Of a DNA stretch of 64,000 bases, positions 15,583-40,618 are shown in pieces. Position 1 is the stretch's first letter; every line of letters begins with the position of its first letter. The translations under genes were made by a program, and so were the position numbers. This stretch comes from Dendrobates tinctorius. Its lineage: Eukaryota. The DNA lies in the NCBI RefSeq assembly GCF_039654945.1, contig NW_027361730.1, forward strand, positions 31,124,001-31,188,000, in the 5' to 3' direction. The notes beneath the pieces were generated by a model. The model searched no databases and was not told the DNA's origin. It was given only the letters and a program-made list of their open reading frames with translations.

Positions 15583-15936
15583 TGTTGTGAGTTCATTCTC
15601 CCCTTCACCTTTGATGTCTGATGAACTCCCTCTGCGGGTGAAGAGAGGTAGTGAAACTGATTGGGATGGGAAGAACCTGTCGTCTGAACAGGCGGAGTGT
15701 GATTGGACATCTGGAATTTTTGAGTGGATATAAGGCAGCCGACGCCCTGCAGGGCTGCTGGTGATCCTTTCTGCTCTGAGCTCTTGCATCCAGTTTAGTT
15801 CCTGTCTACTAAAAGCTAAGTTTTGCCCTGCTATTATTCCATGAGATTTTGTCTGGTTTCCTTAGTGTTTGTATTCAGCCAGTCCTGGTTGGGACTGGCT
15901 GAATTCCATTTTTGTCTCTGATCAGTTTATCTCTTT
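15583..15936 (+). mobile_element. 5' fragment of an LTR of the same family as the 23514 and 31581 LTRs
   Basis: Starts TGTTGTGAGTTCATT; shares GGATATAAGGCAGCCGACGCCC...GCTGGTGAT. Confidence 0.8.
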
Positions 15937-17229
15937 CTGGATGCAAGAGCTCAGAGCAGAAAGGATCACCAGCAGCCCTGCAGGGCGTCATCGGCATCTT
16001 CTGCGGCAGGCCTGCCCCAAGGAATGGAAAGAGACTCAGACTGCTCTGTGTGGATTATAAGCACCTGTGGAATACAAATCACCCACCTGTGGATTACAAA
16101 TTGGGAACGCTGTCGCGGATCCGCATTGTTGGTTAGAGGATCCGGGGTGGTACCAGGAGCTGTGCAGGATGGCGGTGTTACTTCAACACAGAAAAGAGAT
16201 CCAGGTGTTTGCTGTTGTCCCCAATGGACTGGGGCCCCCTCCTACGTACCCCTGGGGCCAGCGATATGTACCAGGAGTCCGGCGCTCCCACATACTGGAC
16301 CCTGGCAGATGGGTGGAAAGGCCTGCCAATGCCCCACCCAGCAGAGGGAGTGGCACTGAGAAAAAGTTTGGCTGCAGTTGCTTGGCGCCATTCGATTGCT
16401 GCCCACCGGACGGTATGAGACGCTGCTGGTGTCGAGGCATCGGCCGCCTGGAGTGGCAATGGCGGCGGGATGTCGAGCTCCGCCAGAAAGTGTCATCTGC
16501 AGAGCCACGAGCAGGCAGCAGGATGATGAGGGGGAAAGCGGAGCCTGTGCGGAATCAGCGGGAGCGGCCACCCAGAATATCGGCGGAGAGTCTGCCCGCG
16601 GAGGCCCTAAGCCTGGAAGCTAGGCCCGTCGGATGACAGGGTGAAGAGCAGAGACCGCGGGAGGAGCTGCGTGATGACGTAACGGAGGCCGCGGTGCCGG
16701 GGAAGGTGAGAGTTCCTGCGGCCCCCACCATTTGGCTGCAGCACGCGGCAGCCTGCGTACCTGAGAGACCGGTCACAAGAGGCCCTCCCCTCTATGCTGA
16801 ACTGAGCGGGGCCTCCGCTCCAAGTCCTGAACCACCCCGCCCGGAGACGCCACGTACGGTGCCGCCGGAGCGGAGCCTGATCCCATAGGGCGCTGTTGCG
16901 CTTCCCCTGCCACTGACGACCTCATTTCTAAAAGCGGTCACTACCCCGGCCCCGGCTGAAGCGTCAAGTGCGGCCTACCCTGCGGCCACGGTTATGCCGG
17001 TGCTGGAACCGGCTGTGTCCTATTTGGCAGGTCCCGTGACCCAACATACCGAGAACACAGCTACCCCCATCCGCCATTCGGCTCCAGCGGCTGCTGGGCC
17101 GCAGAAACCATCGGCCGCCTCTGTCCTTCCCTCTTCTTCGGTGGAGCCCTGCCCAATGGACTCTAGAGCCTGCGCTGTGCCCTCCATTTGGGTTGCGGAG
17201 GTTATTAAAAAGAAGAAGGCACGGGAGCA

Positions 17230-19129
17230 TCTAAAGAAGAATATAATGCTGTCTGCAGAACCTGCAGGGCACAAATCAGATTATCTAAAGCTGAAAATGA
17301 ATTGAGGCTTGCAAGAGATGTCAAAAGCAATAATAAAGGATTTTGGGGATATGTCAAAAGTAAAAGAAAAGTCAAAGATGCTATAGGATTTTTACAGGAT
17401 GAAAATGATGAAATGGTAAGACAGGATGTTGAGAAGGCTGAACTTTTAAATTCCTATTTTGCATCTGTTTTCTCTCAGAAAGGAAATGTAACATCAACTG
17501 TTATTCACTGTCCTATTAAGGGAATAGAAGAATCCAGGATATCTATAAACAGAAAGATAGTGAGGAAACACTTAGCTAGCCTAAATGAATTCAAGTCTCC
17601 AGGTCCAGATGAATTACACCCCAGAGTACTGAAGGAGATAGCAGAAGAAATTTTTGAACCCCTCTCTATAATCTTTGAAAATTCTTGGAGAACAGGAGAA
17701 GTGCCAGAAGACTGGAGAAGAACAAATGTTGTTCCTATCTTCAAAAAGGGGAAGAAGGTGGACCCAGGTAACTATAGGCCGGTGAGTCTGACTTCTATAC
17801 CAGGAAAGATCTTTGAACAAATTATTAAACAACATGTATGTCAATACCTGGATAAGAATGAAGTGATTAAACAGAGTCAGCATGGGTTTGTAACTAATAA
17901 GTCATGTCAGACTAACTTAATTTCCTTCTATGACGGTATCACTGATTGGTTGGATCAAGGAAATGCTGTAGATATAGTATATCTTGACTTCAGCAAAGCA
18001 TTTGACAAAGTCTCTCATACAATCCTTATTGAAAAAATGATTAAGTATGGAATGGACAAGGCAACTGTTAGGTGGATTCATAACTGGCTTAGTGATCGGA
18101 CCCAAAGAGTGGTCGTAAATGGCTGCACATCCAGTTGGAAGAATGTCTCAAGTGGGGTACCACAGGGCTCTGTCCTGGGCCCTGTATTGTTCAACATCTT
18201 TATCAACGATTTAGATGAAGGAATTGAGGGTAAACTGATTAAATTTGCTGATGACACAAAGCTAGGAGGGATAGCTAATACTAGAGAAGAGAGAGAGAGG
18301 ATTCAAAAAGATTTAAATAAACTGGAGAAGTGGGCAGCAACTAACAGAATGGTTTTTAACAGGGAGAAATGCAAAGTACTACATCTGGGCAATAAAAATG
18401 GAAAAAGCATATATAGAATGGGAGGAATAGGGCTAAGTGACAGCACATGTGAAAAAGACTTGGGTATACTAATAGATCACAGACTGAATATGAGTCAACA
18501 GTGTGATGCAGCAGCAAAAAAGGCAAATGCAATTCTAGGATGTATTAACAGAAGCATACAGTCTAGATCACGTGAAGTCATTATTTCCCTCTACTCCTCT
18601 TTGGTCAGACCTCATCTGGAATATTGTGTCCAGTTTTGGGCACCACATTTTAAAAAAGACATCAACAAACTGGAGCAAGTTCAGAAAAGAGCGACCAGAA
18701 TGGAGACCGGTCTGCAAACCCTGTCTTATGAGGAAAGGTTGCAGGATTTGGGAATGTTTAGTTTGCAAAAGAGAAGACTGAGAGGAGACTTAATAGCTGT
18801 CTACAAATATCTAAAGGGCTGTCACATTGTAGAAGGATCAACTTTATTCTCATTTGCACAAGGAAAGACTAGAAGCAATGGGATGAAACTGAATGGGAGG
18901 AGACACAGATTAGATATTAGAAAAAACTTTTTGACAGTTAGAGTGATCAATGAGTGGAACAGGCTGCCACGAGAAGTGGTGAGTTCTCCTTCAATGGAAG
19001 TCTTCAAACAGAGGCTGGACAGACATCTGACTGGGATGATTTAGCGAATCCTGCTTTGAGCAGGGGGTTGGACCAGATGGCCCAGGAGGTCCCTTCCAAC
19101 TCTACGATTCTATGATTCTATGATTCTAT
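17230..19129 (+). mobile_element. 5'-truncated CR1 LINE, young
   Basis: Open RT frame to the stop at 19044; CR1 3' UTR GGGTTGGAC...GGTCCCTTCCAAC; (ATTCTATG)n tail; GAGCA duplication at the junctions. Confidence 0.95.
17302..19044 (+). CDS. CR1 ORF2 reverse transcriptase (partial, uninterrupted)
   Basis: KSPGPDELHP, NYRPVSLTS, YLDFSKAFD, SGVPQGSVLGP, FADD. Confidence 0.92.
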   Translation: MRLARDVKSNNKGFWGYVKSKRKVKDAIGFLQDENDEMVRQDVEKAELLNSYFASVFSQKGNVTSTVIHCPIKGIEESRISINRKIVRKHLASLNEFKSPGPDELHPRVLKEIAEEIFEPLSIIFENSWRTGEVPEDWRRTNVVPIFKKGKKVDPGNYRPVSLTSIPGKIFEQIIKQHVCQYLDKNEVIKQSQHGFVTNKSCQTNLISFYDGITDWLDQGNAVDIVYLDFSKAFDKVSHTILIEKMIKYGMDKATVRWIHNWLSDRTQRVVVNGCTSSWKNVSSGVPQGSVLGPVLFNIFINDLDEGIEGKLIKFADDTKLGGIANTREERERIQKDLNKLEKWAATNRMVFNREKCKVLHLGNKNGKSIYRMGGIGLSDSTCEKDLGILIDHRLNMSQQCDAAAKKANAILGCINRSIQSRSREVIISLYSSLVRPHLEYCVQFWAPHFKKDINKLEQVQKRATRMETGLQTLSYEERLQDLGMFSLQKRRLRGDLIAVYKYLKGCHIVEGSTLFSFAQGKTRSNGMKLNGRRHRLDIRKNFLTVRVINEWNRLPREVVSSPSMEVFKQRLDRHLTGMI

Positions 19130-19252
19130 GAGCAGCAGATATGGAGCCTGCTTCATGAAAAGGGAGAGGCAGGTATGGCGGCTAAGAGATCGAGGGGACG
19201 GCTGGTGTACACTAACATTGCAAAGGGTTATGGTTTCATCCAGGATGAGACT

Positions 19253-20686
19253 GGGGCGTGCAATATTATTCGGCCCCTTTACTTTCAGTGCAGCAAACTC
19301 ACTCCAGAAGTTCATTGTGGATCTCTGAATGGTCCAATGTTGTCCTAAATGACTAATGATGATAAATATAATCCACCTGTGTGTAATCAAGTCTCCGTAT
19401 AAATGCACCTGCTCTGTGATGGTCTCAGGGTTTTGTTTGATGCACAGAGAGCATCATGAAGACCAAGGAACACAACAGGCAGGTCTGTGATACTGTTGTG
19501 GAGAATTTTAAAGCCGGATTTGGATACAAAATGATATCCCAAACTTTAAACATCCCAAGGAGCACTGTGCAAGTGATCATATTGAAATGGAAGGAATATC
19601 ATACCACTGTAAATCTACCAAGACTCGGCCATCCCTCTAAACTTTCATCTCAAACAAGGAGAAGACTGATCAGAGATGCAGCCAAGAGGCCCATGATCAC
19701 TCTGGATGAACTGCAGAGATCTACAGCTGAGGTGGGACAGTCTGTCCATAGGACAACAATCAGTCGTACACTGCACAAATCTGGCCTTTATGGAAGAGTG
19801 GCAAGAAGAAAGCCATTTCTTAAAGATATCCAATCCATAAAAAGTGTCGTTTAAGGTTTGTAACAAGCCGCCTGGGAGACACACCAAACATGTGGAAGAA
19901 GGTGCTCTGGTCAGATGACACCAAAATTGAACTTTTGGTAACAATGCCAAACGATATGTTTAGCGTAAGGGCAACACAGCTCATCACCCTGAACACACCA
20001 TCCCCACTGTCAAACATGGTGGTGGCTGCATCATGGTTTGGGCCTGCTTTTCTTCAGCAGGGACAGGGAAGATGGTTAAAATTGATGGGAAGTTGGATGG
20101 AGCCAAATACAGGACCAATCTTGAAGAAAACCTGTTGGAGTCTGCAAAACACCTGAGACTGGGACGGAGATTTGTCTTCCAACAAGGCAATGATCCCAAA
20201 CATAAAGCAAAATCTACAATGGAATGGTTCACAAATAAATGTATCCAGGTGCAGAATGGCCAAGTCAAAGTCCAGACCTGAGAGAATCTGTGGAAAGAGC
20301 TGAAATCTGCTGTTCACAAACGATCTCCATGAAACCTCACTGAGCTTGAGCTGTTTGTCAAGCAAGAATGGGAAAGAATTTCAGTCTCTTGATGCACAAA
20401 ACTGATAGAGACATACCCCAAGCGACTTGCAGCTGTAATCGCAGCAAAAGGTGGCGCAACAAAGTATTAAGTTAAAGGGGTCGAATAATATTGCATGCCT
20501 CACTTTTCAGTTTTTGAATTTCCACAAAAATTTAAAATAACCAATAAATTTCGTTCAATTTCACAATTGTGTCGCACTTGTTGATTCTTCACCAAAAATT
20601 TACATTCGGTATCTTTATGTTTGAAGCATGATATGTGGGAGAAAGTTGAAAAGTTCCAGGGAGCCGAATACTTTCGCAAGGCACTG
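19253..20686 (+). mobile_element. Tc1 transposon lacking the outer left TIR; frameshifted transposase 19456-20470
   Basis: Right TIR ...GAATACTTTCGCAAGGCACTG followed by TA; MKTKEH, WSDDTK, FQQGNDPKH, GGATKY. Confidence 0.92.
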
Positions 20687-20844: not shown

Positions 20845-23197
20845 CCCCTTCACTACCTAGGGTGGTTTGCACGTTAACTCCCGGGCCAATTTTTACAATT
20901 CAGACCACTGTGCCTTTATGAGGTAATAACTCTGAAACGCTTCCATGGATCCCGGTGATTCTGACACTGTTTTCTTGAGACATATTGTACTTCATGTTAG
21001 TGATAAAATTTAATTCAAATAACTTGCGTTTATTTGTGAAAAAAATGGAAATTTGGCGAAAATTTTTAAAATTTCACAATTTTCCAACTTTGAATTTTTA
21101 TGCTCTTAAATCACAGAGATACGGCACGCAAAAATCTTAATAAGTAACATTTCCCACATGTTTACTTTACATCAGCACAATTTTGGAACCCAAATTTTTT
21201 TTTGTTAGGAAGTTATAAGGGTTAAAAGTTGACCAGCGAGTTCTCATTTTTGCAACACCATTTTATTTTTACGGACCACATCACATTTGAAGCCACTTTG
21301 AGGGGTCTATATGATAGAAAATACCCAAAAGTGACACCATTCTAAAAACTGCACCCCTTAAGGTACTCAAAACTACATTCAAGAAGTTTATTAACCCTTC
21401 AGGTGCGTCACAGGAATTTTTTTGAATATTTAAAAAAATGAACATTTAACTTTTTTTCACAAAAAAAATACTTCAGGTTCAATTTTTTTTCTTTTACCAA
21501 GGGTAACAGGAGAAATTGGACTGCAAAAGTTATTGTGCAGTTTGTACTGAGTACGCTGTTACCTGATATGTGGGGGGGAACCACTGTTTCGGCGCATGGC
21601 AGAGCTCAGAAAGGAAGGAGCGCCGTTTGACTTTTTCAATGCAAAATTGGCTGGAATTCAGATCGGACGCCATGTCACGTTTGGAGAGCCCCTGATGTAC
21701 CTAAACAGTGGAAACCCCCCAAGTGAACCCTTTCTGGAAACTAGACCCCCTAAGGAACTTATCTAGATGTGTGGTGAGAACTTTGAACCCACAAGGGCTT
21801 CACAGAAGTTTATAACGTACAGCCGTACAATTAAAAAATCATATTTTTCCCACAAAAATGACCTTTACACCCTCAATTCATATTTTTTCAAGAGTAACAG
21901 GACCCTAAAAGTTATTTTGCAATTTGTCCTGAGTACGCTGATACCCCATATGTGGGGGTAAACCACTATTTGGGTGCATGGCAGAGCTCGGAAGGGAAGC
22001 AGCGCCATTTGACGTTTTTGGCTGGAATTAAGATCGGACACCATGTCGCGTTTGGAAAGCCCCTGATGTACCAAAACAGTGAAAACCCCCCACAAATGAC
22101 ACCATTTTGGAAACTAGACCCCCCAAGGAACCTATCTAGATGTGTGGTGAGCACTTTGAACCCCCCAGTGCTTCACAGAAGTTTATAACGACCGGGTGTG
22201 AAAATAAAAAAATCGTATTTTTTCCACAAACAAGATCTTTTAGTCACCAATTTTTTTTATTTTCCCAAGGGTAACAGGAGAAATTGGACCCCAAAAGTTG
22301 TTGTCCAATTTGTCCTGAGTACGCTGATACCCCATATGTGGGAGAAAACTACTGTATAGGCACACGTCGGGGCTCGGAAGGGAAGTAGTGACGTTTTGGA
22401 ATGCAGACTTTGATGGAATGGTCTGTAAGTGTCATGTTGCCTTTAGAGAGCCCCTGATGTGCGTAAACTGTGGAAATCCCCCACAAGTGACCCCATTTTG
22501 GAAACTACACCCCCTAAGGAACTTATCTAGATGTGTGTTGAGCACTTTGAACCCCCCAGTGCTTCACAGAAGTTTATAACGACCGGGTGTGAAAATAAAA
22601 AAATCGTATTTTTTCAGCAAACATGATCATTTAGTCCCCATTTTTTTTATTTTCCCAAGGGTAACAGGAGAAACTGGACCCCAAAAGTTGTTGTCCAATT
22701 TGTCCTGAGTATGCTGATACCCCATATGTGGGAGAAAACTACTGTATAGGCACACGTCGGGGCTCGGAAGGGAGGTAGTGACGTTTTGGAAAGCAGACTT
22801 TGATGGAATGGTCTGCGGGTGTCATGTTGCCTTTGGAGAGCCCCTAATGTACCTAAACAGTGGAAACCCCCACAAATGACCCCATTTTGGAAACTAGACC
22901 CCCTAAGGAACTTATCTAGATGTGTGGTGAGCACTTTGAACCCCCAAGGGCTTCACAGAAGTTTATAATGCCCGGGCATGAAAATAAAAAAATTGTATTT
23001 TTTCCACAAACATGATCATTTAGCCCCCAATTTTTTTATTTTTGCAAGGGTAACAGGAGAAATTGGACCCCAAAAGTTGTTGTCCAATTTGTCCTGAGCA
23101 CGCTGATACCCCATATTTGGGGGAAAACTAATGTATGGGCACACGTCAGGGCTCGGAAGGGAAGTAGTGACGTTTTGGAATGCAGACTTTGGAATGG
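20845..23197. mobile_element. TTAA-target (piggyBac-like) non-autonomous element, left part, with ~390-bp tandem repeats
   Basis: TTAA followed by CCCCTT terminus; the unit AAGGGTAACAGGAGAAATTGGAC recurs near 21500, 21890, 22267, 22657 and 23046. Confidence 0.6.
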
Positions 23198-23513
23198 TGT
23201 TATGAATGGGTCACCGAGGAGAAAAAAACAAAACAAGCTAAGTCACAGAAAACCAGAGAGGTTGGTAACTATGCAGATTGCAGATCCCTGATCCTAACCA
23301 CACAACTAGCAGCAGCCGTGGAGCGTACCTACGATGGTCCTAGACGCTTCGTCACAGCCGGAGGACTAAATAAGCCTATAGCAAGAAAGGGGGAAAACTA
23401 ACTGCCCCAGAGCAGACCTCATAGGAAAGACAGCCCCCACACATGTATTGACGGTGAAACAAGATGAAAGCACAAACACAGGCAGGAAAATAGGCTGACC
23501 AAGCGATGGGGCC

Positions 23514-26500
23514 TGTTGTGAGTTCATTTTCCCCTTCATTACTGAGGCCCGAGGAACTCCCTCTTCTGGTAAAGAAAGGTAGTGAGCCTGATTGTCAAAC
23601 ACCTGAGGCTGATGATTGTGACTGGCTGAGTGGAGTTACGGACTGGATATAATGCTGCCGACGCCCTTCTGCCCTGCGGGTGATTTCTCTGTGGGATCCT
23701 TGGAGACCAGTCTGAATTCCTGCTCCTCCAAAGCTAAGTTTGCTTCTCGGCCTTTTGCTTTTGTGCTTTGACTTTGTTTTTTTTCTGGATTTCTGCCATT
23801 CCCTGCTGGGGTGTGCTGAATTCATTTAGCTCTGTCTTCTGAAAATACCTGAGTGCTGATTCAGTTTTTGAAGCCTAGCTGCTTCAGGGCCTTTTTCATA
23901 TCAGCTGGTTGGCTTTTGTCTTTGATAGGGTTTTGGCAGATTGCAGACAGCAGCCTTCCTGTCCTTTCCTATCTAGGTACTTTTGGGGCCCCATCTTTGC
24001 TCAGTCTATCTTTCTGTCTGTGTTAGTATTTTCATCTTGCTTCACCGTCATTATATGTTGTGGGCTGCCTATTGCTTTGGGGTCTGCTCTGGGGCAGTTT
24101 AGATTTCCCCTTTCTTTCTTTAGGCCTATGTATTTCTCCGGCTGTGATCGAGGGGTCTAGGGCATCGTAGGAACCCCCCACGGCTACTGCTAGTTGTGTT
24201 GATAGGGTCAGGGGTCTGCAATCTGATAGTTGCCAACTTCTCTGGTTTTCTGGACTTAGCTTGTATTTCTGCTTTTGCCTCCTACGGTGACTCATTCATA
24301 ACAGAATCACCCGCCATACCGCAGATTCTAGGGTACTCAATAGCAGGAAAGAATTGTAAAAAAAAAAAAAAAAAGTGTATATTTTTTCCTCTATATCTCT
24401 GAGGCCATAGGGGGAATTTTTTTTTTCTCTCAATGGAGATAAAGCAATTGTCTGATCGTGTGGAGCAGCTCGCTGCGGAAGTGCGGGGAATTTCCGCCTA
24501 CCTTGCTCATTCACATGCTGCTGAACCAAAGATTCCTACACCTGATGTATTTTTTGGGGATCGGTCTAAATTTTTGAATTTCAAAAATAATTGTAAATTA
24601 TTTTTTGCCTTGAAGCCTAACTCGTCAGGGAGCTCCGCGCAGCAGGTTAAAATTGTCATCTCTTTGCTGCGTGGCGATCCCCAGGATTGGGCGTTTTCTT
24701 TGAAACCAGATGATCCTATTCTCACTAATGTGAACGCATTCTTTCAAGCTTTGGGGTTGTTGTATGATAAACCTAATGCCATTGATCAGGCTGAAAAGAC
24801 CCTGCTGGCATTGAGCCAGGGTCGTGATTCTGCAGAATTGTACTGTCAAAAATTCCGAAAGTGGGCAGTACTTACTACCTGGAATGATAATGCCTTGGCT
24901 GCTCTCTTTCGGAAGGGGTTGTCAGAAGCCGTAAAAGATACTATGGTGGGATTTCCTGTTCCCTCTGGTCTGGACGATTCTATGTCATTAGCCATTCAGG
25001 TTGATCGGCGTTTACGTGAACGCAGGATTGCACGTGAGGTGTTGCCACCGGTTGAATAGACGTCTGAACCTATGCAATGTGATAGAGTATTGTCTAAGGC
25101 GCAACGTCAGGAGTTCAGAAGGCGTAATAAGCTGTGTTTTTTCTGTGGAGATGCCTTGCATATTATTTCTGTTTGTCCTAAACGAGAGAAACGCTTTGCA
25201 CACACGTTTTCTGTTGGTGGTGTTCAACCTAAGTTTCTTCTGGCAATTACTCTGATCTGCTCCCTGTCCACATTTTCCGCCATGGCGTTTGTGGATTCGT
25301 GAGCAGCCCTAAACCTAATGGACTTGGATTTTGCTAAACGTTGTGGATTTCCGATGACACCTCTGCAGACGCCTATCCCTTTGAGGGGAATTGATGCTAC
25401 TCCTTTGGCTAAAAATAAACCCCAGTTTTGGACCCAGGTGGTAATGCGGGTCGCCCCAGACCATCAAGAAAATTGCAGATTTCTGGTGTTGCATAATCTG
25501 CATGATACTGTTGTTCTGGGGTTTCCCTGGTTACAGATTCATAATCCAGTTTTGGATTGGAAATCTGTGTCTGTGGTGAGTTGGGGTTGTCGGTGTGCCT
25601 TTAGTGAGGCTCCGGTGTTTTCCACCTCTCCTCAGTCGCATGATGTTCCTGATTATTTGGCGGACTTTTATGATGTATTTAGTGAGAATGAGTCTGCGTC
25701 TCTGCCTCCTCATAGGAGTTATGACTGTGGAATTGAACTGAGCCCGGGGTGTAAATTTCCCAAGGGTCGGCTCTTCAATTTATCTGTACCCGAGCACGAG
25801 GCTATGTGATCCTATATTAAGGAGGCGTTGGAGAAGGGTCATATTAGACCATCCTCGTCACCCTTGGGTGCCGGGTTTTTTTTTGTAGCCAAAAAGGATG
25901 GATCATTAAGACCTTGTATTGATTATCGTGCCCTCAACAAAATTATTGTTAAATATCAGTATCCGTTACCCCTGATTTCTGATCTATTCTCCAGAGTTAA
26001 AGGTGCTTGCTGGTTTACCAAGCTTGACCTCAGGGGGGCGTATAATCTTATTCGCATTAAGCATGGGGATGAATGGAAGATGGCGTTTAATACTCCGGAG
26101 GGGCATTTTGAGTACCTGGTGATGCCTTTTGGGCTCACTAATGCCCCTTCTGTCTTCCAGTGCTTCATGAACGATATTTTCCGAGATTTTGTTGATAAAT
26201 TTTTGATTATCTATCTGGATGATATTTTGATCTTCTCCAAGGATTGGGATTCTCATGTGGAACATATTCGGACTGTGTTCCGGATCTTGAGGGAGAATTC
26301 CCTGTATGTCAAGGGATCTAAATGCCTTTTTGGAGTACAGAGGATTTCTTTTTTGGGATTTATTTTGTCCCCGTCAACTATTGAAATGGACCCGGCTAAG
26401 GTACAGGCCATTCACGATTGGGTTCAGCCCACTTCTTTGAAGGCCCTCCAGAAGTTTTTGGGTTTTGCTAATTTTTATCGGAAATTTATAGCAAAATTTT

Positions 26501-26815
26501 CTAGTATTGCCAAGCCATTGACTGATTTGACTAAAAAGGGTGCTGATGTGTTAAATTGGTCATTATATGTTGGGGGCTGCCTATTGCTTTGGGGTCTGCT
26601 CTGGGGCAGTTTAGATTTCCCCTTTCTTTCTTTAGGCCTATGTATTTCTCCGGCTGTGATCGAGGGGTCTAGGGCATCGTAGGAACCCCCCACGGCTACT
26701 GCTAGTTGTGTTGATAGGTTCAGGGGTCTGCAATCTGGTAGTTGCCAACTTCTCTGGTTTTCTGGACTTAGCTTGTATTTCTGCTTTTGCCTCCTACGGT
26801 GACTCATTCATAACA
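23514..26815 (+). mobile_element. Related Gypsy element inserted in the 3' LTR of the minus-strand copy; 5' LTR 23514-24303, truncated 3' LTR ~26561-26815
   Basis: TGTTGTG...CATAACA termini; GGGGCC on both flanks; gag 24433, CFFCGDALHIISVC, protease, RT 25828-26560; RNase H and integrase deleted. Confidence 0.92.
24305..24314 (+). promoter_or_regulatory. Self-priming primer-binding site (AATCACCCGC)
   Basis: 1 nt after the 5' LTR; exact complement of GCGGGTGATT at 23676-23685, ~25 nt after the TATA-like GATATAAT. Confidence 0.75.
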
Positions 26816-29800
26816 GGGGCCCAAACTAACTAGAAAGGATAGGAAAGGAAAGACACTGTCTGCAATCTGCAAAAAACCCTACAAAAATAAAGTCCAACAC
26901 TTCTGATAGCAAAATTAACCCTGAAGTCACTAGACTTCTCCCACAATATCAGCACTCTGAAATATTCTGAGACAGAGCAAAAAGAGGCCAATCTAATAAG
27001 GGACAAAAAGCAAATTGGCAAATACAGATAAATAAGAGTGGAAATTTAGCGCAGCCCCAGCCGGGGCTGGCTGACCACACAAGAAACTGAATAGACCAAC
27101 AAAATCAAGTGTGAACATTAGCAGAAAAACTTAGCTTTAGATGACTGGAACAGAGCTGAAAACCAAGACCTGACAAGCCTGAAGGTATCACCAGCACCAG
27201 AAAAGGGCGTCGGCTGTCTTAAATCCAGTCTGAGATCCCTGAGGTCCAATCGTCATCCTCATTATCAGGTGGCAGATCTCTACTGATTAAATCAGCCTCA
27301 CTACCTCCGGTTCCAGCAGAGGGAGTCTGGAAGGAGATCTCACAACTGGTGGACCAGAAAATGAACTTTAAACCGGGGACCAATGGTCCTATGCCGGTTG
27401 GAAAATCGCTGAGCCTTTTTCTGAGAGAGTGACAACTTATCCACCACTTGATCCCATATCTGCTGCATTCTCTCAACCACAGTGTCCACACCTGGGCAAG
27501 ACGAAGATTCCACTTGTCCTGAAGAGAATCGAGGATGAAACCCAAAATTATAGAAAAAGGGTGACATCAAAGGGGCAGAACTAGCTCTATTGTTCAGTGC
27601 GAATTCGGCCAAGGACAAAAATGAGACCCAATCATCCTGATCAGCAGATATAAAACATCTTAAATAAGACTCCAAGGTCTGGTTTGTTCTCTCAGTATGT
27701 CCATTGGTCTGGGGATGAAACACGGAGGAGAAGAATAACTGAATTCCCAGATTGGAACAAAAGGCTTTCCAGAATCTGGAAACAAACTGGACTCCTCTGT
27801 CGGACACAATGTTCTCAGGAATCCCATGTAACCGAACCACCTGTTGTAAAAACAAGGGCACCAACTCAGCCGAAGATGGCAACTTTGGGAGTGGTACAAG
27901 ATGGACCATCTTCGAAAATCTATCACAAATCACCCAGATAACAGTCATTCTCTGAGAGACAGGAAGATCAGAAATAAAATTCATTGAGATATGGGTCCAT
28001 GGCCTCTTGGGCACCGGCAGGGGCATCAGCAACCCACGAGAACGAGAACAGGATTTAGACCGAGAACAAGTCCCACAGGACTTGACAAAATTCCTGACGT
28101 CACGAGATAAGGCAGGCCACCAAAAAGACCGACTCACCAAATCTCTGGTACCAAAAATACCTGGATGACCAGCCAATGCGGAGCAATGAATTTCAGACAT
28201 CACTCTCTTTCTCCACTGGTCAGGAACATACAATTTTCCCATAGGGCAACGCTCAGGTTTATCCTCCTGAAATTCCTCCAGGGCGCGTCTCAAATCGGGC
28301 GAAATGGCAGAAAGAACTACCCCCTCATCTAGGATGGTAGTAGGCTCGGTCACATTAAGAGAATCGGCAAAGAAACTCCTAGAAAGGGCGTCCGCCTTAA
28401 CATTCTTAGTGCCCGGAAGAAAAGAGACCACAAAATTAAAACGCGTGAAAACAAGGCCCATCTAGCCTGTCTAGGATTCAAGCCTTTGGCCGACTCCAGA
28501 TAAATCAAATTCTTGTGATCGGTGAAGACCACACCTTGATGTCTAGCTCCCTCCAACCAATATCTCCACTCCTCAAATGCCCATTTCATGGCCAACAATT
28601 CCCAATTCCCCACGTTATAGTTGCGTTCAGATGGGGAGAACTTTCGAGAAAAGAAGGCACAGGGATTCATCTTAGAAGTCACAGGGTCTTTTTGGGACAA
28701 AACAGCTCCTGCACCAATCTCAGAAGCATCTACCTCCACCTGAAATGGAAGTGAGACATCAGGTTGCCGTAAAACTGGAGCTGAAGTAAATCTCTGCTTA
28801 AACTCCTGAAATGCTGAGACAGCCTCAGGAGACCAATTCAGCACATCAGCGCCCTTCTTGGTCAGATCAGTCAGTGGTTTGGCAATACCAGAAAAATTAC
28901 CTATAAATTTACGATAGAAATTAGCAAAAGCCAAAAACTTCTGGAGAGCCTTCAAAGAAGTAGGCTGAACCCAATCATAAATGGACTGTACCTTGGCCGG
29001 GTCCATTTCAATAGTCGACGGAGACAAGATAAATCCCAAAAATGAAATCCTCTGTACACCAAAGAGGCATTTCGATCCCTTAGCAAACAGGGAATTCTCC
29101 CTCAAAATCCGGAACACAGTCCGAACATGTTCCACATGAGAATCCCAATCACTGGAAAAGATCAGAATATCATCCAAATATATGATCAAAAACTTATCCA
29201 CAAAGTCCCGGAAAATATCATTCATGAAGGATTGGAAGACAGAAGGGGCATTAGTGAGAGCCCAAAAGGCATCACCAGGTACTCAAAATGTCCCTCCGGA
29301 GTATTAAACGCCGTCTTCCATTCATCCCCGTGCTTGATGCGAATAAGATTATACGCCCCCCTGAGGTCAAGCTTAGTAAACCAGCAGGCACTCTTAACTC
29401 TGGAGAATAAACCAGACATCAGAGGTAACAAGTACTGATATTTAACCATCACCACAGACCCAGATTTCCAATCTAAAACTGGATTATGAGCTTGCAACCA
29501 GGGAAAACCCAGAACAATAGTATCATGCAAATTATACAGCACCAGAAATTTACAATTTTCTTGGTGGTCTGGGGCAACTCGCATTATCACCTGGGTCAAA
29601 ACTGAGGTTTATTCTCCGCCAAAGGAGAAGCATCAATACCCCTCAAAGGAATAGGACAAACCACAACGTTTAGCAAAGTCCAAATCCATCAGATTCAACG
29701 CTGCTCCAGAATCCACAAAAGCCTTAGTGTAAAAAGTGGATAAGTAGCAGATCAGAGTACTTGCCAAAAGAAACTTAGATTGTACACCACCTACAGCAAA

Positions 29801-30714
29801 TGTGTGTGCAAAACGTTTTTCTCATTTAGGGCAGACAGAAATAGTATGAGAGGCGTCTCCACAGAAAAAACACAGCCTATTAGGCCATCTAAACTCCTGA
29901 CGTTGCGCCCTAGACAAAACCCCATCACATTGCATAGGTTCAGACATTTGTTCAAAAGGTGGCAGCGCCTACTGTGTAGTTTTACGTTCACATAAACGCT
30001 GATCAACTTGAATAGCTAATGACATAGAATTATCCAGACCAGAGGGAACAGGAAATCCCACCATAACATCTTTTACGGTCTCTGATAAACACTTCCGAAA
30101 GAGAGCTACCAATGCACTATCATTCCATGTAGTAAGGACCGCCCACTTTTGGAATTTTTGACAGTATAACTCTGCAGAATCCTGACCCTGGTTTAATGCC
30201 AACAGAGTTCTCTTAGCTTGATCAACAGCATTAGGCTCATCATACCCCAAGGCTTGAAAAAATGCATCCACATTAGTCAAAATAGGATTTTCAGGTGTCA
30301 GAGAAAAAGCCCAATCCTGGGGATCGCCGCGCAGCAAGGAGATGACAATTTTAACCTGCTGCACAGAGCTCCCCGATGAGTTAGGCTTCAAGGCAAGAAA
30401 TAATTTTCAATTATTCTTCAAATTCAAAAATTTAGACCGATCCCCAGAAAACACATCAGGAGTGGGGATCTTAGGTTCAGCTGCATGTGACTGAATGAGG
30501 TAAGTGGAAAATCCCTGCACTTCAGCAGCAAGTTGCTCCACACGATCAGTCAATTGCTTAATCTCCATTAGGAAAAAAAAAAATCCTCCCACGGCCTCAG
30601 AAAAAAAAATAGGAAAAAATATATTAAAAAAAAATTAATTCTGACACTTTTTTTTTCTCTTTTTCTTCTAAACAATCTTTCCCTGCTATTGAGTACCCTA
30701 GAATCTGCGGTATG

Positions 30715-30724
30715 GCTGGTGATT
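30715..30724 (-). promoter_or_regulatory. Self-priming primer-binding site (AATCACCAGC on the minus strand)
   Basis: Exact complement of minus-strand GCTGGTGATT at 31392-31401 in its own 5' LTR. Confidence 0.75.
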
Positions 30725-31581
30725 CTGTTATGAAACGGGTCACCGAGGAGGACAACAAAAGCTAAGTCCCAGAAAACCAGAGAGGTTGGTAACTATGCAG
30801 ATTGCAGATCCCTGATCTTAACCACACAACTAGCGGTAGCAGTGGAGCGTTCCTACGATGATCTAGATGCCTCGTCACCGCCGGAGGACTACATAAGCCT
30901 AAAGTAAGAAAAGGGAAAACTAACTGCCCCAGAGCAGACCTCAAAGGAAAGACAACCCCCACACATGTATTGACGGTGAAATAAGATGAAAACACAAACA
31001 CAGGCAGGAAAATAGGCAGAGCAAACGATGGGACCCAACTAACTATAAAGAACAGGAAAGGAAAGACACTGTCTGCAATCTGCCAAAAACCCTACAAAAA
31101 TAATGTCCAACACTTCTGATAACAAAATTAGCCCTGAAGTCACTAGACTTCTCCCACTATATCAGCACTCTGAAATATTCTGAGACAGAGCAAAGAGAGG
31201 CCAATCTAATAAGGGACTAAAAAGCAAATTGGCAAATACTGATAAATAAGAGTGGAAATTCAGTGCTGGGGCTGGCTGACCACACAAAAAACTGAATAGA
31301 CCAACAAAATCAAGTGTGAACATTAGCAAAAACAGTTAGCTTTGAGAAGGCTGGAACAGAGCTGAAAACCCAGACCTGAGAAACCTGAAGCAATCACCAG
31401 CACTAGACTAGGGCGTCGGCTGTCTTAAATCCAGTCTGAGATTCCTGAGGTCCAATCGTCATCTTCATTATCAAGTGGTAGATCTCTACTGATTAAATCA
31501 GTCTCACTACCTCCTGTTACCACCAGAGGGAGTCTGGAAGGAGAACTCACAGCTGGTGGACCAGAGAATGAACTCACAACA

Positions 31582-32511
31582 GCCAGGCTTGGAAGCTGTG
31601 AAGGGTCTCTCTCGCAGTTAACCTACACATGTAACACAGTTCCATCCAGGCCAGCAGAGGGGACTCTGAACCGGATTTGAAGGGAGGAGTGCTCTCTGAG
31701 GGCCAGGAGGAAGGAGTAGTCAGTTAGTGTGAGGAGGGCCACGTATGGAGAGAAGCTGGAGGTTGAGCTGAGGAAAGAGTGCTCCCTCACAGCAAGAGCG
31801 CATGAACTGGAGCCTGGTCTCCACGGTTGTATGGATACTAACGGTCCTGCAACAGACACCAGAGGAGTAGGAGGCTGTAAATGCCCTACCCCCATCTAAG
31901 ACTCAGAGGCACAACAGCACGGAGTGAGCCAAGAGAGGAATAGCGGCTACAGCTGTCTGCCATACGAGGAGTGCTCGTAGAAGAGAATTAGGAGGAATTT
32001 CAGTGTAATTCAGTACTAGGAGTACTTCACTCAAATAAGCGCTAAGAAGGAGACTGCACAGCCCATCTGCTGAGAGAGAATCCCTGAGTTGCTTCCAGGC
32101 TAGCCTGCTCCGGTACCATCTGTAATCAGGACCCTGGACTGCATTTATCAAGTAAAGGTACAGAAATTGCACCCCGCTGTGTCTTTGTCTGCTTCCTACC
32201 CTTCCAGCACTGCTACATCCCCTGCCAACCACATCTACACTGCCCTGGGACTACAACTTCACCTGTGGGGAGCTTTTACATCTTTGCTGCACCATATCAT
32301 CAGTCCCAGTGGATCTGCATACAGCGTCGGCTTAACATATCACTTGCCGAACACCACAGGTGGCGTCACGAACTATTCCATTAACTACATTCCACCATTC
32401 AATCTTCCCCTATTAATTGGGTGCCCAGGGCCACGGACCGGGTCACCGCTGCTGTGACACATCCCGCTGACCCCGGCACCGAGTACCCCACAGCCCTGGT
32501 AGGGCGACCCA
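31582..32511. mobile_element. Remnant of an unrelated LTR-like repeat (3' part)
   Basis: Ends GGGCGACCCA; no coding capacity; abuts the Gypsy LTR. Confidence 0.45.
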
Positions 32512-33681
32512 TGTGTACACGTTGCGGATTGGGCTCAAGAATTTCCTGACCGGATTCTGCATCTCTTGGAAGAATCCGCAGGTCAAAATCCGCGCATTTT
32601 TTATGCTGATTTTGTGCGGATTTAGTGCGGATTTTAAGCGAATTGTCATGCGTTTTTAGGCCTGCTGTTTTCTATAATGAAATGGATGTAGAAACATAGC
32701 GGAATCCGCACAAAGACTTGACATGCTGCGGAAAATAAACTGCTGCTTTTCTGCGCAAAATTTTCCGCAGCATGTGCAGTTGTGTCCTGAATGTAGCTGG
32801 ATGTATCCTTTACCAGGGGTTTAAGAACACCCTCTACCCATCAAGATATCTGCTCAGTAAGGGTGCCCACGCATGAAATAATCGGCCTCTCTAGGTTTAC
32901 TGTAGTTATTATTGCTTTAAGATAGAGTGGGGGTCTGTCCCACATCCAAAAGTCATGAGTAGAGTTGAGCGACTTTTGGTTTTTTAGGGTCGCGTTTCGT
33001 TTCGTGAAACCCGACTTTTCCAAAAGTCGGGTCGAGAAAGATCGTCCGATTATAGGGAGAAGTCGGGGTCGTCCCGAAACACGAAACCCAATGTAAGTCA
33101 ATGGGGAATAAAAGTCGGCAGTGAGAGGAGGACAGGAAACACACCAACAGTGCCCATTTGAATGCCAAAAGCAACAATTCTTCTTACTTAAGCTTGTCAA
33201 CCTTAATTAACTTCATAATACAAGTTACGCGCTGAAAAATGGGGGTTATTTGGCTACAGACTGTGGGGGGGGGAGGGCTGGCTCCAGGTTTTCATGTGCC
33301 CTGGGCGAAAGAGCGCCCCTTTAACACATACCACAACTCATCATGCTCCGATACGGCAGAGAAATAGCGGTATAGTACAATGAAAAATACCTCACTTTTT
33401 ACATCTCATGACGAGGCCCATCTATTTCTCCATACAGAATCATTGGTCCCATATAATGTTTGAAACAGTATATGATGAGCTCCACATAATGCTACAGTAT
33501 ATGTTGGTCCCCATGGATGTCTTATGGGCCCCATGGATGTCTTATGGGCCCAAATAATGCTCCAAACATAATGGGCCCCATTTCTAATGCTCTAGTGTAT
33601 AATGGGCCCTGTAAATGCTGCTCCAGTGTCTGATGTCCACCTTTGGAATGTTCCAGTGTATGGTGGGCCCCATCTATCATT

Positions 33682-36178
33682 CTCAGACGGTGTTAGGCCC
33701 AGTATGGATTGCACGTGATTGCACAAAGGTGAGAAAGGGTACCGTATCCCCAGATAACATGTATGGATAGTGTACACATTCAAAATATATGTCTATACAT
33801 CAGGAGGCAGGCTCAGACGGTGTTAGGCCCAGTATGGATTGCACGTGATTGCACAAAGGTTAGAAAGGGTACCGTATCCCCAGATAACATGTATGGATAG
33901 CGTACACATTCAAAATATATGTCTCAGGAGGCAGGCTCAGATGGTGTTAGGCCCAGTATGGATTGCACGTGATTGCACAAAGGTTAGAAAGGGTACCGTA
34001 TCCCCAGATAACATGTATGGATAGCGTACACATTCAAAATATATGTCTCAGGAGGCAGGCTCAGACGGTGTTAGGCCCGGTATGGATTGCACGTGATTGC
34101 ACAAAGGTTAGAAAGGGTACCGTATCCCCAGATAACATGTATGGATAGCGTACACATTCAAAATATATGTCTCAGGAGGCAGGCTCAGACGGTGTTAGGC
34201 CCAGTATGGATTGCACGTGATTACACAAAGGTTACAAAGGGTACCGTATCCCCGGATAACATGTATGGATAGCGTACACATTCAAAATATATGTATCAGG
34301 AGGCAGGCTCAGACGGTGTTAGGCCCAGTATGGATTGCACGTGATTGCACAAAGGTTAGAAAAGGTACCGTATCCCCGGATAACATGTATGGATAGCGTA
34401 CACATTCAAAATATATGTCTCAGGAGGCAGGCTCAGACGGTGTTAGGCCCAGTATGGATTGCACGTGATTGCACAAAGGTTAGAAAGGGTACCGTATCCC
34501 CAGATAACATGTATGGATAGCGTACACATTCAAAATATATGTCTCAGGAGGCAGGCTCAGACGGTGTTAGGCCCAGTATGGATTGCACGTGATTGCACAA
34601 AGGTTAGAAAGGGTACCGTATCCCTGGATAACATGTATGGATAGCGTACACATTCAAAATATATGTCTCAGGAGGCAGGCTCAGACGGTGTTAGGCCCAG
34701 TATGGATTGCACGTGATTGCACAAAGGTTAGAAAGGGTACCGTATCCCCAGATAACATGTATGGATAGCGTACACATTCAAAATATATGTCTCGGGAGGC
34801 AGGCTCAGACGGTATTAGGCCCAATATGGATTGCACGTGATTGCACAAAGGTTAGAAAGGGTACCGTATCCCCAGATAACATGTATGGATAGCGTACACA
34901 TTCAAAATATATGTCTCAGGAGGCAGGCTCAGACGGTGTTAGGCCCAGTATGGATTGCACGTGATTGCACAAAGGTTAGAAAGGGTACTGTATCCCCGGA
35001 TAACATGTATGGATAGCGTACACATTCAAAATATATGTCTCATGAGGCAGGCTCAGACGGTGTTAGGCCCAGTATGGATTGCACGTGATTGCACAAAGGT
35101 TAGAAAGGGTACCGTATCCCCAGATAACATGTATGGATAGCGTACACATTCAAAATATATGTCTCAGGAGGCAGGCTCAGACGGTGTTAGGCCCAGTATG
35201 GATTGCACGTGATTGCACAAAGGTTAGAAAGGGTACCGTATCCTCGGATAACATGTATGGATAGCGTACACATTCAAAATATATGTCTCAGGAGGCAGGC
35301 TCAGACGGTGTTAGGCCCAGTATGGATTGCACGTGATTGCACAAAGGTTAGAAAGGGTACCGTATCCCCAGATAAAATGTATGGATAGCGTACACATTCA
35401 AAATATATGTCTCAGGAGGCAGGCTCAGACGGTGTTAGGCCCAGTATGGATTGCACGTGATTGCACAAAGGTTAGAAAGGGTACCGTATCCCCAGATAAC
35501 ATGTATGGATAGCGTACACATTCAAAATATATGTCTCAGGAGGCAGGCTCAGACGGTGTTAGGCCCAGTATGGATTGCACGTGATTGCACAAAGGTTAGA
35601 AAGGGTACCGTATCCCCAGAACACATGTATGGATAGCGTACACATTCAAAATATATGTCTCAGGAGGCAGGCTCAGACGGTGTTAAGCCCAGTATGGATT
35701 GCACGTGATTGCACAAAGGTTAGAAAGGGTACCGTATCCCCAGATAACATGTATGGATAGCGTACACAATCAAAATATATGTCTCAGGAGGCAGGCTCAG
35801 ACGGTGTTAGGCCCAGTATGGATCGCACGTGATTGCACAAAGGTTAGAAAGGGTACCGTATCCCCAGATAACATGTATGGATAGCGTACACATTCAAAAT
35901 ATATGTCTCAGGAGGCAGGCTCAGACGGTGTTAGGCCCAGTATGGATTGCATGTGATTGCACAAAGGTTAGAAAGGGTACCGTATCCCCAGATAACATGT
36001 ATGGATAGCGTACACATTCAAAATATATGTCTCAGGAGGCAGGCTCAGACGGTGTTAGGACCAGTATGGATTGCACGTGATAGCACAAAGGTTAGAAAGG
36101 GTACCGTATCCCCGGATAACATGTATGGATAGCGTACACATTCAAAATATATGTCTATACATCAGGAGGCAGGCACAG
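33682..36178. repeat. 124-bp satellite, about 20 highly similar copies, inside the hAT
   Basis: Exact 124-bp period (ORF starts 33839, 33963, 34087 and so on); few substitutions per unit. Confidence 0.97.
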
Positions 36179-36605
36179 TATGGATTTGACGGCCCAGATT
36201 ACACAGCGGAGGAGCAGGGAGAGGTAAAGATTGCAAATGCTGGGGCCCTGCCCAAGCAAGGGGGGCCCACTCGTGGGCGTCGGTACTGGCACTGGGCCCC
36301 TCATAGTACAGCGGTGTGTCTGACGGCGGGTGTGCACCACCACCGTCAGAGACACTTGATTGCACTATGAGGGACCCTGTGCCAGTGCCCGCGCCCAAGA
36401 GTCGGCCTACCCACCTGTCCAGGGCAACGGCACTCGCACGGTGTCGTGCGCTAGGTGGTTACCCCGGCCATGGGGGGGGAGGCAGCACAGTTAGGGAGTT
36501 TTAGAAAGTGGCATATGTTGATGTTGGACATTCAGCTGATGCAAAAGGCGAAATAGGTGAAGTACCAGGAAGAGGTGGACCAAAGCAAGCCATTTTTCTG
36601 TCACC

Positions 36606-39600
36606 CTATGTGTCATCAGGGGAAGGTGGGACAAAATCCTTGGAAACCCATGCGTGGTTCATTTTAATGAAGGTTAGATCATCCACATTTTGGGTTGACA
36701 GACGGGTCCTTTTTTCTGTCAGGATTGATCCAGCTGCACTGAAGACTCTTTCCGATAGCACACTTGCAGCTGGGCAAGCGAGCTCCTGTAAGGCATATTG
36801 GGCCAATTCAGGCCAGGTGTCCAGTTTAGCGGCCCAATAGTCAAAGGGGAATGACCTGTGTGGGAGAACATCGATATGGGAGGAAAAGTAGTTTGTAACC
36901 ATAGTTGACAACTGCTGTCTCCTGTCACTTTCCATCGATGCAGTATTACCAGTTGTGTGAGCGGTATTTGAAAAATCAGTCCACAACATTGTCATGAAAC
37001 CCCTGTCTCCAACGCCACTTCTGCTGTGTGCACCACGAACACCTCTGCCAAGCTTCCCCCGGCCCGTACGGCTCGTGTGAGAACCATCACCGCTGCTGTG
37101 TGCTGGGAATGCCTCAAGCAACCGATTTACCAGAGTTGCTTGTTTATTAGCCAATATTAGGTCAAGGTTCTCCTGTGGCATGATGTTTTGTAATTTGCCT
37201 TTATAGCGTGGATCCAGGATGCTGGCCAACCAGTAGTCGTCATCGTTCATCATTTTGGCAATGCGGGGGTCCCTTTTTAGGATCCGCAAGGCATAATCTG
37301 ACATGTGGGCCAATGTTCCCGGTGTCAATGATGCACTGCGAGTGCTGGGTGGAGGAGCACTTTCTGGCAAATCCACATCCCTCCAGTCACGCACAAACCC
37401 TGTACCAGACCTTGCCATGCCAACATTTTCAGTTGCCCCACGAGATGCATCCTCCTCCCCTAAGTAATCATCCCCATCATCATCCTCCTCCTCCTCTTCT
37501 TCCTCCACATCGTCCAGGAGAGGTCCCTGAGCAGACAATGGCTGAATGTCATCAAGGATTCCCTCCTCCTCTTCCTCCTCATCAACATTGGCTGCAGACG
37601 CCTGCTCCTTAAGGTGCGTCAAAGTTTGCATGAGCAGATGCATAAGTGGGATGCTCATGCTTAGGATGGCGTCGTCTGCGCTTACCAGCCGTGTGCATTC
37701 CTCAAAACACTGAAGGACTTTACAAAGGTCTTTCAGCTTCGACCACTGCACACCTGTCAACTCCATGTCTGCTCTCAAAGTGCCTGGCCGTGTATCCTCC
37801 CACAAATGCATTATGGCCTGCCTCTGCTCGCACAGCCGCTCCACCATGTGCAGGGTGGAGTTCCACCTTGTTGCAATGTCGATAATGAGGTGGTGGTTGG
37901 GAAGGTGGAGCAATCGCTGCAGCTTCTGCATACGAACGGAGTGTACAGGCGACCGGCGGATGTGCGCGCACAGTCTTCGCACCTTCTGGAGCAGGGCTGT
38001 TAACTCCGGATAATTTTTGAGGAAGCACTGCACCACCAGGTTCAAGGTGTGAGCCAAGCAAGGTATGTGGCTGAGTTTTGAAAGGGCTATGGCTGCCACA
38101 AAATTACGGCCGTTATCACTAACTACCTTGCCTGCCTCAAGATGTACACTGCCCAGCCATGACTCAGTTTGTCGCTTCAAGTACTCGGCCAGCACCTCGG
38201 CGGTGTGTCTGTCGCCCAAACACATCATCTGCAACACAGCCTGCTGACGCTTTCCACTAGCTGCTCGATAGGGGGACACATCATGTGTAACAGTGGCAGC
38301 TGCAGATGGAGTGCTCGTACGACTGCGCTCTGTGGACGAGCTTTCGCTTCTGGAGGAGGAGGAGGAGGGTCGAACGCCTACAGCCAACTGTTTCCTATAC
38401 CGTGGGCTAGGCAGCACTGTCCCACCACCACTGTCCCCTGTGGACCCTGCATCCACCACATTAACCCAGTGCGCAGTGATGGACATGTAACGGCCCTGGG
38501 CATGCCGACTGGACCATGCATCAGTTGTGAGGTGCACCTTTCCGCTCACTGACTGCTTGAGTGCATGGACAATGCGGTCTTTCACATGATGGTGGAGGGC
38601 TGGGATGGCTTTGCGAGAGAAGAAGTGGCGACTGGGTAGGTCATAGCGTGGTACTGCATAGGCCATGAGTTCGCGGAAAGCTGTGCTTTCCACCAACCGA
38701 AAGGGCATCATCTCAAACGAGATTAGTTTGGCAATGTGGGCGTTCAAACCCAGTGTACGCGGATGAGAGACTGAGTACTTTCTTGACCTACTCATAGTGT
38801 CTGGGAGGGTGAGCTGGACTTGAGAGCTGCATATGGTGGAAGTAGCGGTGGACAGGGCGGACTGAGAGAGGGTTGATGATGGTGATGGAGTTGGTGTTCT
38901 TTCTGATGGCCTAGAATCAGTCTTTCGTTGATATAACAGTGGGATTCCCTGACTGCTGTGGTCTTGCAACGACACCTCAACATTTGCTGCTGTGCTAACC
39001 GGTGGGCTTACAGTGGAGGAAACAATGTAGCGTTGCTGACTACCTTCGTTGTGATCAGTTGCACATGTGGCACTTGAGGTTTGGTGTTGTGTCCACGCTT
39101 GCAAGTGCATGCTGGTTAAATGTCTAAGCATGCAACTGGTATTCAAATTTTTCAGATTTTTCCCTCGGCTAAAGGTCTTTGCGCACTTCTTACAGATAAC
39201 CTTGGCCTGATCATGAGGATTTTGGTCAAAAAAGTGCCACACTGCACTCTTCCTACTTTGGCAGACATTTTGCGGCCTAGCACGCTGTGATCTTTTGACC
39301 CTCTGGACAAGCTGTCCAGCAACTCTTTTGATGTTTGGAACCTGTCTTTGGAGTGCTCCGGGCCTGCCAGATAACAGCTGTTGCGATGTCGATGTCTGCT
39401 GTGGATGCTCCTCATCTGAGCTATTGGAAGCAGCACCCTCTTCCCCCAATGGATGCCAATCTGGGTCAACAACTGGGTCATCCATCACCTCCTCTTCTAT
39501 GTCATGTGCACCTTCCTCTGTGTCACCGTGTATGGTGGTATAGTGTGCGGGAAGGGGCACCTGAGTCTCATCAGAGTCAGAATCTGGCTCTGTACACTGC

Positions 39601-40142: not shown

Positions 40143-40218
40143 TTTTGGTAGAAATGTAGACAAAATCCAACAAACTATATAGTAATGTAAAACAAGGTAC
40201 AAGGTGTCTATAGGACAG

Positions 40219-40612: not shown

Positions 40613-40618
40613 AGATTG

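Follow-up and report, generated by a model that had tools for sequence, protein, structure and literature searches.

The locus and its two nested elements

Within a 64,000-nucleotide stretch of the Dendrobates tinctorius genome (contig NW_027361730.1 of assembly GCF_039654945.1, positions 31,124,001 to 31,188,000; hereafter the window), two copies of a Ty3/Gypsy retrotransposon lie on opposite strands. Each carries, inside its 5' long terminal repeat (LTR), a short motif complementary to the site just past that repeat. We conclude that both copies very probably belong to a frog chromovirus that starts reverse transcription without a transfer RNA (tRNA), by self-priming of the type known from Tf1. 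The sites concerned, in window coordinates, are the following.

23676-23685, + strand: predicted self-primer of the + copy, GCGGGTGATT, the predicted first 10 nucleotides (nt) of the transcript
24305-24314, + strand: primer-binding site (PBS) of the + copy, AATCACCCGC, at +2 to +11 past the LTR end; its start is not TGG
23647-23653, + strand: TATA-like box of the + LTR, ATATAAT
31392-31401, - strand: predicted self-primer of the - copy, GCTGGTGATT
30715-30724, - strand: PBS of the - copy, AATCACCAGC, at +2 to +11 past the LTR end
31424-31430, - strand: TATA-like box of the 5' LTR of the - copy, ATTTAAG, with the motif 28 nt on

In the + LTR the motif begins 28 nt after the first T of the TATA-like box, and the - copy has the same geometry; an additional G.U pair is possible in the + copy, between the T at 23686 and the G at 24304. 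The four 10-mers given in a preliminary description of the window were found at the same positions by reading the sequence and by pattern search. The degenerate pattern AATCACCNGC has five matches on the two strands of the window, where 0.52 are expected, and none of 100 shuffles reached five; four of these matches are the motif and PBS sites, and the fifth (1497-1506), which has no LTR context, was taken as chance. The sole difference between the copies is compensated: position 3 of the motif is G in the + copy and T in the - copy, and its partner in the PBS is C and A, respectively, just as the preliminary description had reported when it noted a joint change (G:C versus T:A). The 3' LTR of the - copy has the T at position 3 as well (GCTGGTGATA); this variant therefore predates the insertion of that copy and does not represent later decay.

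The two copies do not lie side by side. They are nested, the + copy lying in the 3' LTR of the - copy and being flanked by a GGGGCC duplication.

23514-26815, + strand: + copy as a whole, internally deleted
23514-24303, + strand: 5' LTR of the + copy, 790 nt, TGTTGTG...CATAACA (TG...CA ends)
24304-26558, + strand: internal part of the + copy, with leader, gag and then fragments up to the reverse transcriptase (RT) domain
24433-25059, + strand: gag open reading frame (ORF) of the + copy, Pfam Retrotrans_gag and DUF4939
25828-26682, + strand: RT ORF of the + copy, RVT_1, continuing into the LTR remnant
26559-26815, + strand: 3' LTR remnant of the + copy, the final 257 nt only, self-primer motif not retained
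23508-23513 (left) and 26816-26821 (right), no strand: target-site duplication of the + copy, GGGGCC, perfect, 6 base pairs (bp)
30726-31581, - strand: 5' LTR of the - copy, 856 nt
27368-30725, - strand: internal part of the - copy, with gag fragments, RT, RNase H and integrase
27340-28461, - strand: integrase ORF of the - copy, continuing into the LTR
26817-27367, - strand: U3-R side piece of the 3' LTR of the - copy, 90.8% identical to the 5' LTR over 554 nt (BLAST), carrying GCTGGTGATA at 27186-27195
23198-23513, - strand: U5-end piece of the 3' LTR of the - copy, 89.6% identical to the 5' LTR over 317 nt (BLAST), detached by insertion of the + copy

The two pieces of the interrupted 3' LTR share exactly six bases (LTR positions 305-310). 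The internal part of the + copy breaks off within the RT region and is fused to position 534 of the 3' LTR, whose remnant is 98.8% identical to the last 257 nt of the 5' LTR. In the - copy the integrase frame runs into the 3' LTR, meeting it about 9 nt inside that repeat, and the C-terminal part of the integrase, the chromodomain and the polypurine tract are therefore missing. Given these deletions both copies are dead, and the + copy, being nested in the - copy, is the younger of the two. The - copy has no target-site duplication: read on the - strand, CTGGC precedes its 5' LTR (31582-31586) and CCATT follows its 3' LTR (23193-23197). Its LTRs are only about 90-91% alike by piecewise BLAST, the measure used here (a value of 92.5%, obtained from the 3' pieces taken in order, was not relied on). 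The - copy may be a recombinant of two older copies.

By their domains, their Gag and their relatives in fish, we place the window copies as defective members of a frog chromovirus within Ty3/Gypsy, similar to the Tf1/sushi elements. Their Pfam domains are Retrotrans_gag and DUF4939 (in the first ORF), RVT_1, RT_RNaseH, Integrase_H2C2 and rve, and among solved structures (PDB) the Gag matched only PEG10, a gene of sushi-like retrotransposon origin. The closest proteins of all come from frogs, Ranitomeya imitator (74%) and Engystomops pustulosus (46%); there are about 5,600 relatives in frogs and fish, including a Takifugu protein at 52% identity and others from fish at about 50%. One Ranitomeya imitator relative, L007, retains gag-asp_proteas (a weak match), RVT_1, RT_RNaseH, Integrase_H2C2, rve, SH3_Tf2-1 and Chromo, the full domain set of chromovirus architecture, and the best PDB match of its RT is Ty3.

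Pairing of motif and primer-binding site across eleven elements

Since two copies yield just one compensated change, which is weak evidence alone, we added nine relatives with a 5' LTR and adjoining sequence, giving a comparison set of eleven elements. Four are from Ranitomeya imitator (L001, L002, L006 and L007), one from Engystomops pustulosus (L003), one from a public-run contig (L004), one from Phyllobates terribilis (L010, 72457-72878) and two from further NCBI assemblies (L008 and L009). The relatives were taken as the DNA around related gag and pol genes, and their LTR ends were read directly; L011 (Aquarana catesbeiana) and L012 (Pimephales promelas), which are rearranged or partial and have no usable LTR/PBS pair, were left out. 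The table of pairs and the slid controls were computed by script. The 24 public runs with the sequence exist as Logan assembled contigs, none of them recorded as RNA. The contigs of four of these runs that were aligned to the + copy are about 100-300 nt long; none spans both motif and PBS, and they showed no pile-up of starts or ends.

In all eleven elements the 14 nt past the 5' LTR have a perfect complement of 9-11 nt in the element's own LTR. Only one of 55 control windows in the leader reached 9 nt, and three LTR pairs of other families in L010 gave a complement of at most 7-8 nt. The PBS starts at +2 or +3 past the LTR and ends at +11 (+12 in L008), and its LTR partner begins 28-31 nt after the first T of the TATA-like box in every element. 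The base at -1 of the motif is T in 10/11 elements and the base at +1 is G in 11/11, which fits the pyrimidine/purine rule for transcription starts. Eight elements were checked for pairing beyond this point, and in none of them does motif base -1 pair with PBS base +12; the helix ends exactly at the predicted +1 G, as would fit a transcript starting there.

The letters of the duplex vary widely among the elements, as illustrated by GCCACTTGT, GCTCCTTGT, GCTTCCTGT, GCCAGTTGT, GCTGGCTATT, GCTGGCTAAT, GCTGGACTT, GCGAAGTCTT and GTCAGATCCTT. Over positions 1-9 of the duplex, all 99 cells of the table nevertheless hold a Watson-Crick pair; eight of the nine positions covary, showing between two and four kinds of pair each, and no fewer than 18 compensated changes must be assumed. 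When the partner was moved by 1-4 nt, only 26-47 of the 99 cells remained paired. We thus observe complementarity at fixed positions, perfectly conserved through sequence change.

Folding recovered the same helix. Applied without any hint to the whole R-U5-PBS region of six elements (about 650 nt each), RNAalifold placed a helix at columns 1-9 and 782-790, with changes on both sides at six of the nine pairs and none broken. In folds of single sequences, the helix is part of the minimum-energy structure for six of eight elements, with a pair probability above 0.9; for the R-U5-PBS RNA of the window copies, the motif-PBS pairing is in the minimum-energy structure of both, with probabilities of 0.91-1.00 in the + copy and 0.97-1.00 in the - copy.

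The preliminary description had proposed Tf1-type self-priming for the two copies and had regarded their single covarying pair as direct evidence of function. The proposal gains from the larger set, in which all eleven elements pair at the same two places, eight of nine positions covary and RNAalifold finds the helix. The single pair is weak as evidence when taken alone, and the covariation argument holds strongly with the nine relatives included. As far as was checked, the outcomes that had been named as telling against self-priming did not occur: none of the eleven PBSs begins with TGG, and motif and PBS never vary independently. The further idea that the pair might separate sub-lineages is plausible. 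The + and - LTRs are only 76% alike. For contigs with 85% identity or more to the + copy, no difference inside motif or PBS appears among those listed as best supported.

A separate feature of the leader lies past the PBS (24330-24430, and 30590-30700 on the - strand): a purine-rich motif, TCTCAATAGCAGGAAAG in the + copy, followed by a run of A and then a run of T. Close variants of it occur in L001, L002, L006, L007 and L010, elements that are otherwise diverged. In L010 an 11-nt segment situated 31 nt before the end of the LTR is complementary to the purine motif, which would place a stem around the PBS; the window copies show no sign of one.

Initiation of reverse transcription and its alternatives

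Self-priming was reportedly proposed for vertebrate Tf1/sushi elements by Butler et al. in 2001; to our knowledge, it has been demonstrated experimentally only in fission-yeast elements, and the vertebrate case rests on sequence complementarity. Tf1 uses nt 1-11 of its RNA as the strand that anneals to the PBS, and RNase H cleavage between nt 11 and nt 12 then yields the primer (PMC7175516). PMC6317226 and PMC4600332, both of which cite Butler et al., describe or propose self-priming for members of the Tf1/sushi group from yeast to vertebrates, and self-priming has likewise been proposed for Tj1 (PMC4600332).

The frog elements resemble Tf1 and Tf2 of Schizosaccharomyces pombe in several ways. 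The yeast elements need no tRNA primer, according to the summary of Levin (1995, 1996) and Lin and Levin (1997, 1998) in PMC7175516, and the frog elements appear to share this trait; in both, the transcript start, a predicted one in the frog elements, is complementary to a PBS just past U5. The gene order is that of Ty3/Gypsy in both, the integrase being followed by an SH3 domain of Tf2-1 type and a chromodomain (seen in the relative L007). The frog elements differ from Tf1 in their vertebrate host, in a long R-U5, which is 612-677 nt in the window-related elements and about 345 nt in L003 and L004, and in that no U5-IR-like helper stem was detected in the frog elements. For Tf1 the requirement for pairing was shown by mutation and compensation, whereas in the frog elements the compensation is natural, and cleavage and priming would follow by analogy.

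Similar likenesses connect the frog elements with the sushi group, including sushi-ichi of pufferfish: they too are vertebrate chromoviruses, DUF4939 and PEG10 matches relate their Gag to the PEG10/RTL genes of sushi origin, and, as in Sushi, the end of the LTR (CATAACA) fits the 3' integrase motif CNTNACA (PMC3601003). For Tj1 of Schizosaccharomyces japonicus and for Tcn1-like elements of fungi and non-seed plants, self-priming has also been predicted from LTR-PBS complementarity (PMC4600332, PMC6317226, PMC7175516). These belong to a chromovirus branch next to Tf1/sushi, and their hosts and sequences differ from those of the frog elements; transposition activity has been shown for Tj1 (PMC4600332), and the evidence for self-priming is, there as here, mostly complementarity. 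With tRNA-primed LTR elements and retroviruses the frog elements share a PBS directly past U5, one or two spacer bases after CA, TG...CA LTR ends and a target duplication of 5-6 bp. Unlike theirs, however, the frog PBS has no TGG start, is not anchored to a conserved host RNA, and differs between close relatives with an internal partner that changes in step. The mechanism is thus one already known for Tf1/sushi elements, of which the frog families are well-supported additional members, and we do not present it as new.

We infer the transcription start, the RNase H cleavage and the priming from sequence, and picture the process as follows. The predicted first base of the transcript is the G of the motif, which lies 28 nt past the TATA-like box; the 9-11 nt of RNA that begin there would fold back over about 630-680 nt of R-U5 onto the PBS, 2-3 nt past U5. 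By analogy with Tf1, cleavage by the element's RNase H where the duplex ends would release an RNA 3' end able to prime minus-strand DNA synthesis into U5. Natural compensation demonstrates maintenance of the pairing rather than priming by it.

Several points weigh against this reading. Because the motif was taken to be whichever LTR segment best complements the PBS, the procedure itself favours pairing, a bias that is only partly answered by the conserved position and by the leader and slid controls. Two of the eight single-sequence folds lack the helix in their minimum-energy structure (pair probabilities 0.15 and 0.5), and we found no conserved U5-IR-like stem by the PBS, the consensus fold of 180 nt at the LTR end of seven elements, which align poorly, containing no pairs. 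The frog duplex has 9-11 bp, unlike the fixed 11 of Tf1. The transcription start at the motif is a prediction from its position in the sequence, and the R/U5 border is undefined, because AATAAA and ATTAAA are absent from both LTRs. Finally, the locus has no present function, both window copies being dead.

That the complementarity is due to chance, or to the choice of the best match in each LTR, has next to no probability in our judgement. Besides the bias just described, it draws on the fact that a 9-nt match in an LTR of about 800 nt is not very rare: a perfect complement of 9-10 nt arose anywhere in the shuffled LTR in 4-73 of 2000 shuffles per element among the eight elements tested (7/2000 and 9/2000 for the two window copies). 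A chance match would not, however, be expected in eleven elements of eleven when 1/55 leader windows has one, nor at a constant distance of 28-31 nt from the TATA-like box and after a T in 10/11; the fall to 26-47/99 paired cells in the slid controls and the helix that RNAalifold found unaided point the same way, and we regard the chance explanation as refuted at the level of these data. A somewhat higher, though still very small, probability attaches to the view that the site past the LTR is bound by a host tRNA, whole or fragmentary, as in most LTR elements, its LTR complement being incidental. ARAGORN, run on the window and on nine fetched loci, identified no tRNA gene with which the PBS could be compared, and some elements are primed by internal tRNA fragments or half-tRNAs (PMC6317226). 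A site for a tRNA 3' end must, however, begin with TGG, the complement of CCA, as none of the eleven does; and since tRNAs are conserved, a site tied to one could not differ at eight of nine positions among relatives, each change being matched in the LTR, which counts against a tRNA primer. Nor does any Rfam family match the region: a scan of 23000-32000 gave two sub-threshold matches to long non-coding RNAs only, which were taken as chance.

The alternative with most in its favour, which we nonetheless consider unlikely, accepts the pairing of the transcript start with the site past U5 and assigns it another purpose, such as leader circularisation for packaging, dimerisation, translation control or strand transfer, the primer being a different one. 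Covariation shows that the duplex is kept and is silent on its role, cleavage and priming are argued from analogy, and no U5-IR-like helper structure was found. What speaks against it is the placement of the paired site, which in 11/11 elements lies 2-3 nt past the LTR, the very point at which a minus-strand primer has to end, together with the lack of any alternative PBS candidate after the LTR (again, a TGG start in 0/11) and the use of the same pairing for priming by the closest studied relatives (PMC7175516, PMC4600332). Tf1-type self-priming is, in our view, the most probable explanation of the pairing.

Self-priming would also have a consequence for the way the two sites evolve. In the standard scheme of retroviral replication, plus-strand strong-stop DNA copies the attached primer. 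If the primer is the transcript's own 5' end, the daughter PBS would be re-templated from it, that is, from the transcript start of the parent, and a single mutation there could thus become a compensated pair within one or two cycles, with no interval lacking the ability to prime. Such re-templating would explain how the letters drift while the pairing is never broken, with eight of nine duplex positions differing, no mismatched cell and U5 regions that can still be aligned. We offer only tentatively, as a possibility that we rate as rather doubtful, the hypothesis that the primer:PBS pair is a self-copying and fast-drifting tag of this kind. Were it true, the pair would be a natural lineage marker of sub-families, and might restrict priming between co-packaged RNAs of different sub-lineages.

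With eleven elements, covariation at eight of nine positions and no broken pair, the frog series comes close to the strongest support obtainable in silico, and it gives a precise and testable prediction of the transcription start. PBS finders built on tRNA libraries would call such elements 'no PBS'; they can be recognised by looking for LTR:PBS complementarity 28-31 nt downstream of the TATA box.

Family abundance and neighbouring repeats

The family appears very abundant in this frog. At a threshold of at least 85% identity, 24,318 pieces of family contigs were found in one DNA run of 2 gigabases, and the family assembled even from runs of 50-120 million letters. Much of the repeat load of the host genome may accordingly come from a tRNA-independent chromovirus. 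Among the family contigs a T>G change at 23653 is nearly fixed, making ATATAAG the majority form of the TATA-like box. Coverage of the U5 end of the LTR (24032-24313) is several times that of U3 or gag, suggesting that solo or truncated LTRs are numerous or that a U5 module is shared. Several contigs of run X1 connect the LTR end (24303) to the LTR start (23515) through an intervening 7-14 letters (CCCAACT or TGGTATGGCTTTCT, for example). They mark head-to-tail junctions between LTRs somewhere in the genome, whether tandem LTRs, fossils resembling circle junctions or nested insertions at LTR ends.

The start of a third related LTR is present in the window at 15583-15989. It is 71% identical to the first 228 nt of the + LTR, breaks off after about 354 nt, and has a box, GGATATAAGG (15726-15735), and a motif, GCTGGTGATC (15757-15766), the latter being the T variant. 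A perfect inverted copy of the 53 nt at 15741-15793 lies at 15937-15989, 100% complementary and separated from it by a loop of 143 nt. This inverted repeat covers the motif and the 16 nt upstream of the predicted start, and adjoins the ORF region 15990-19255; taken together, 15583-15989 has the appearance of a truncated LTR rearranged by fold-back (snap-back).

Two further repeats were noted. The Phyllobates terribilis locus L010 contains a pair of 972-nt LTRs of another family (26930-27901 and 33820-34791), 100% identical and with the ends TGACGCG...GTCACA, whose post-LTR sequence has neither a TGG start nor a complement of at least 9 nt in its own LTR. In the window, about 20 tandem copies of a 124-nt unit, 97-99% identical, occupy 33676-36207, inside a region (32960-41406) that the preliminary description had assigned to a hAT transposon.

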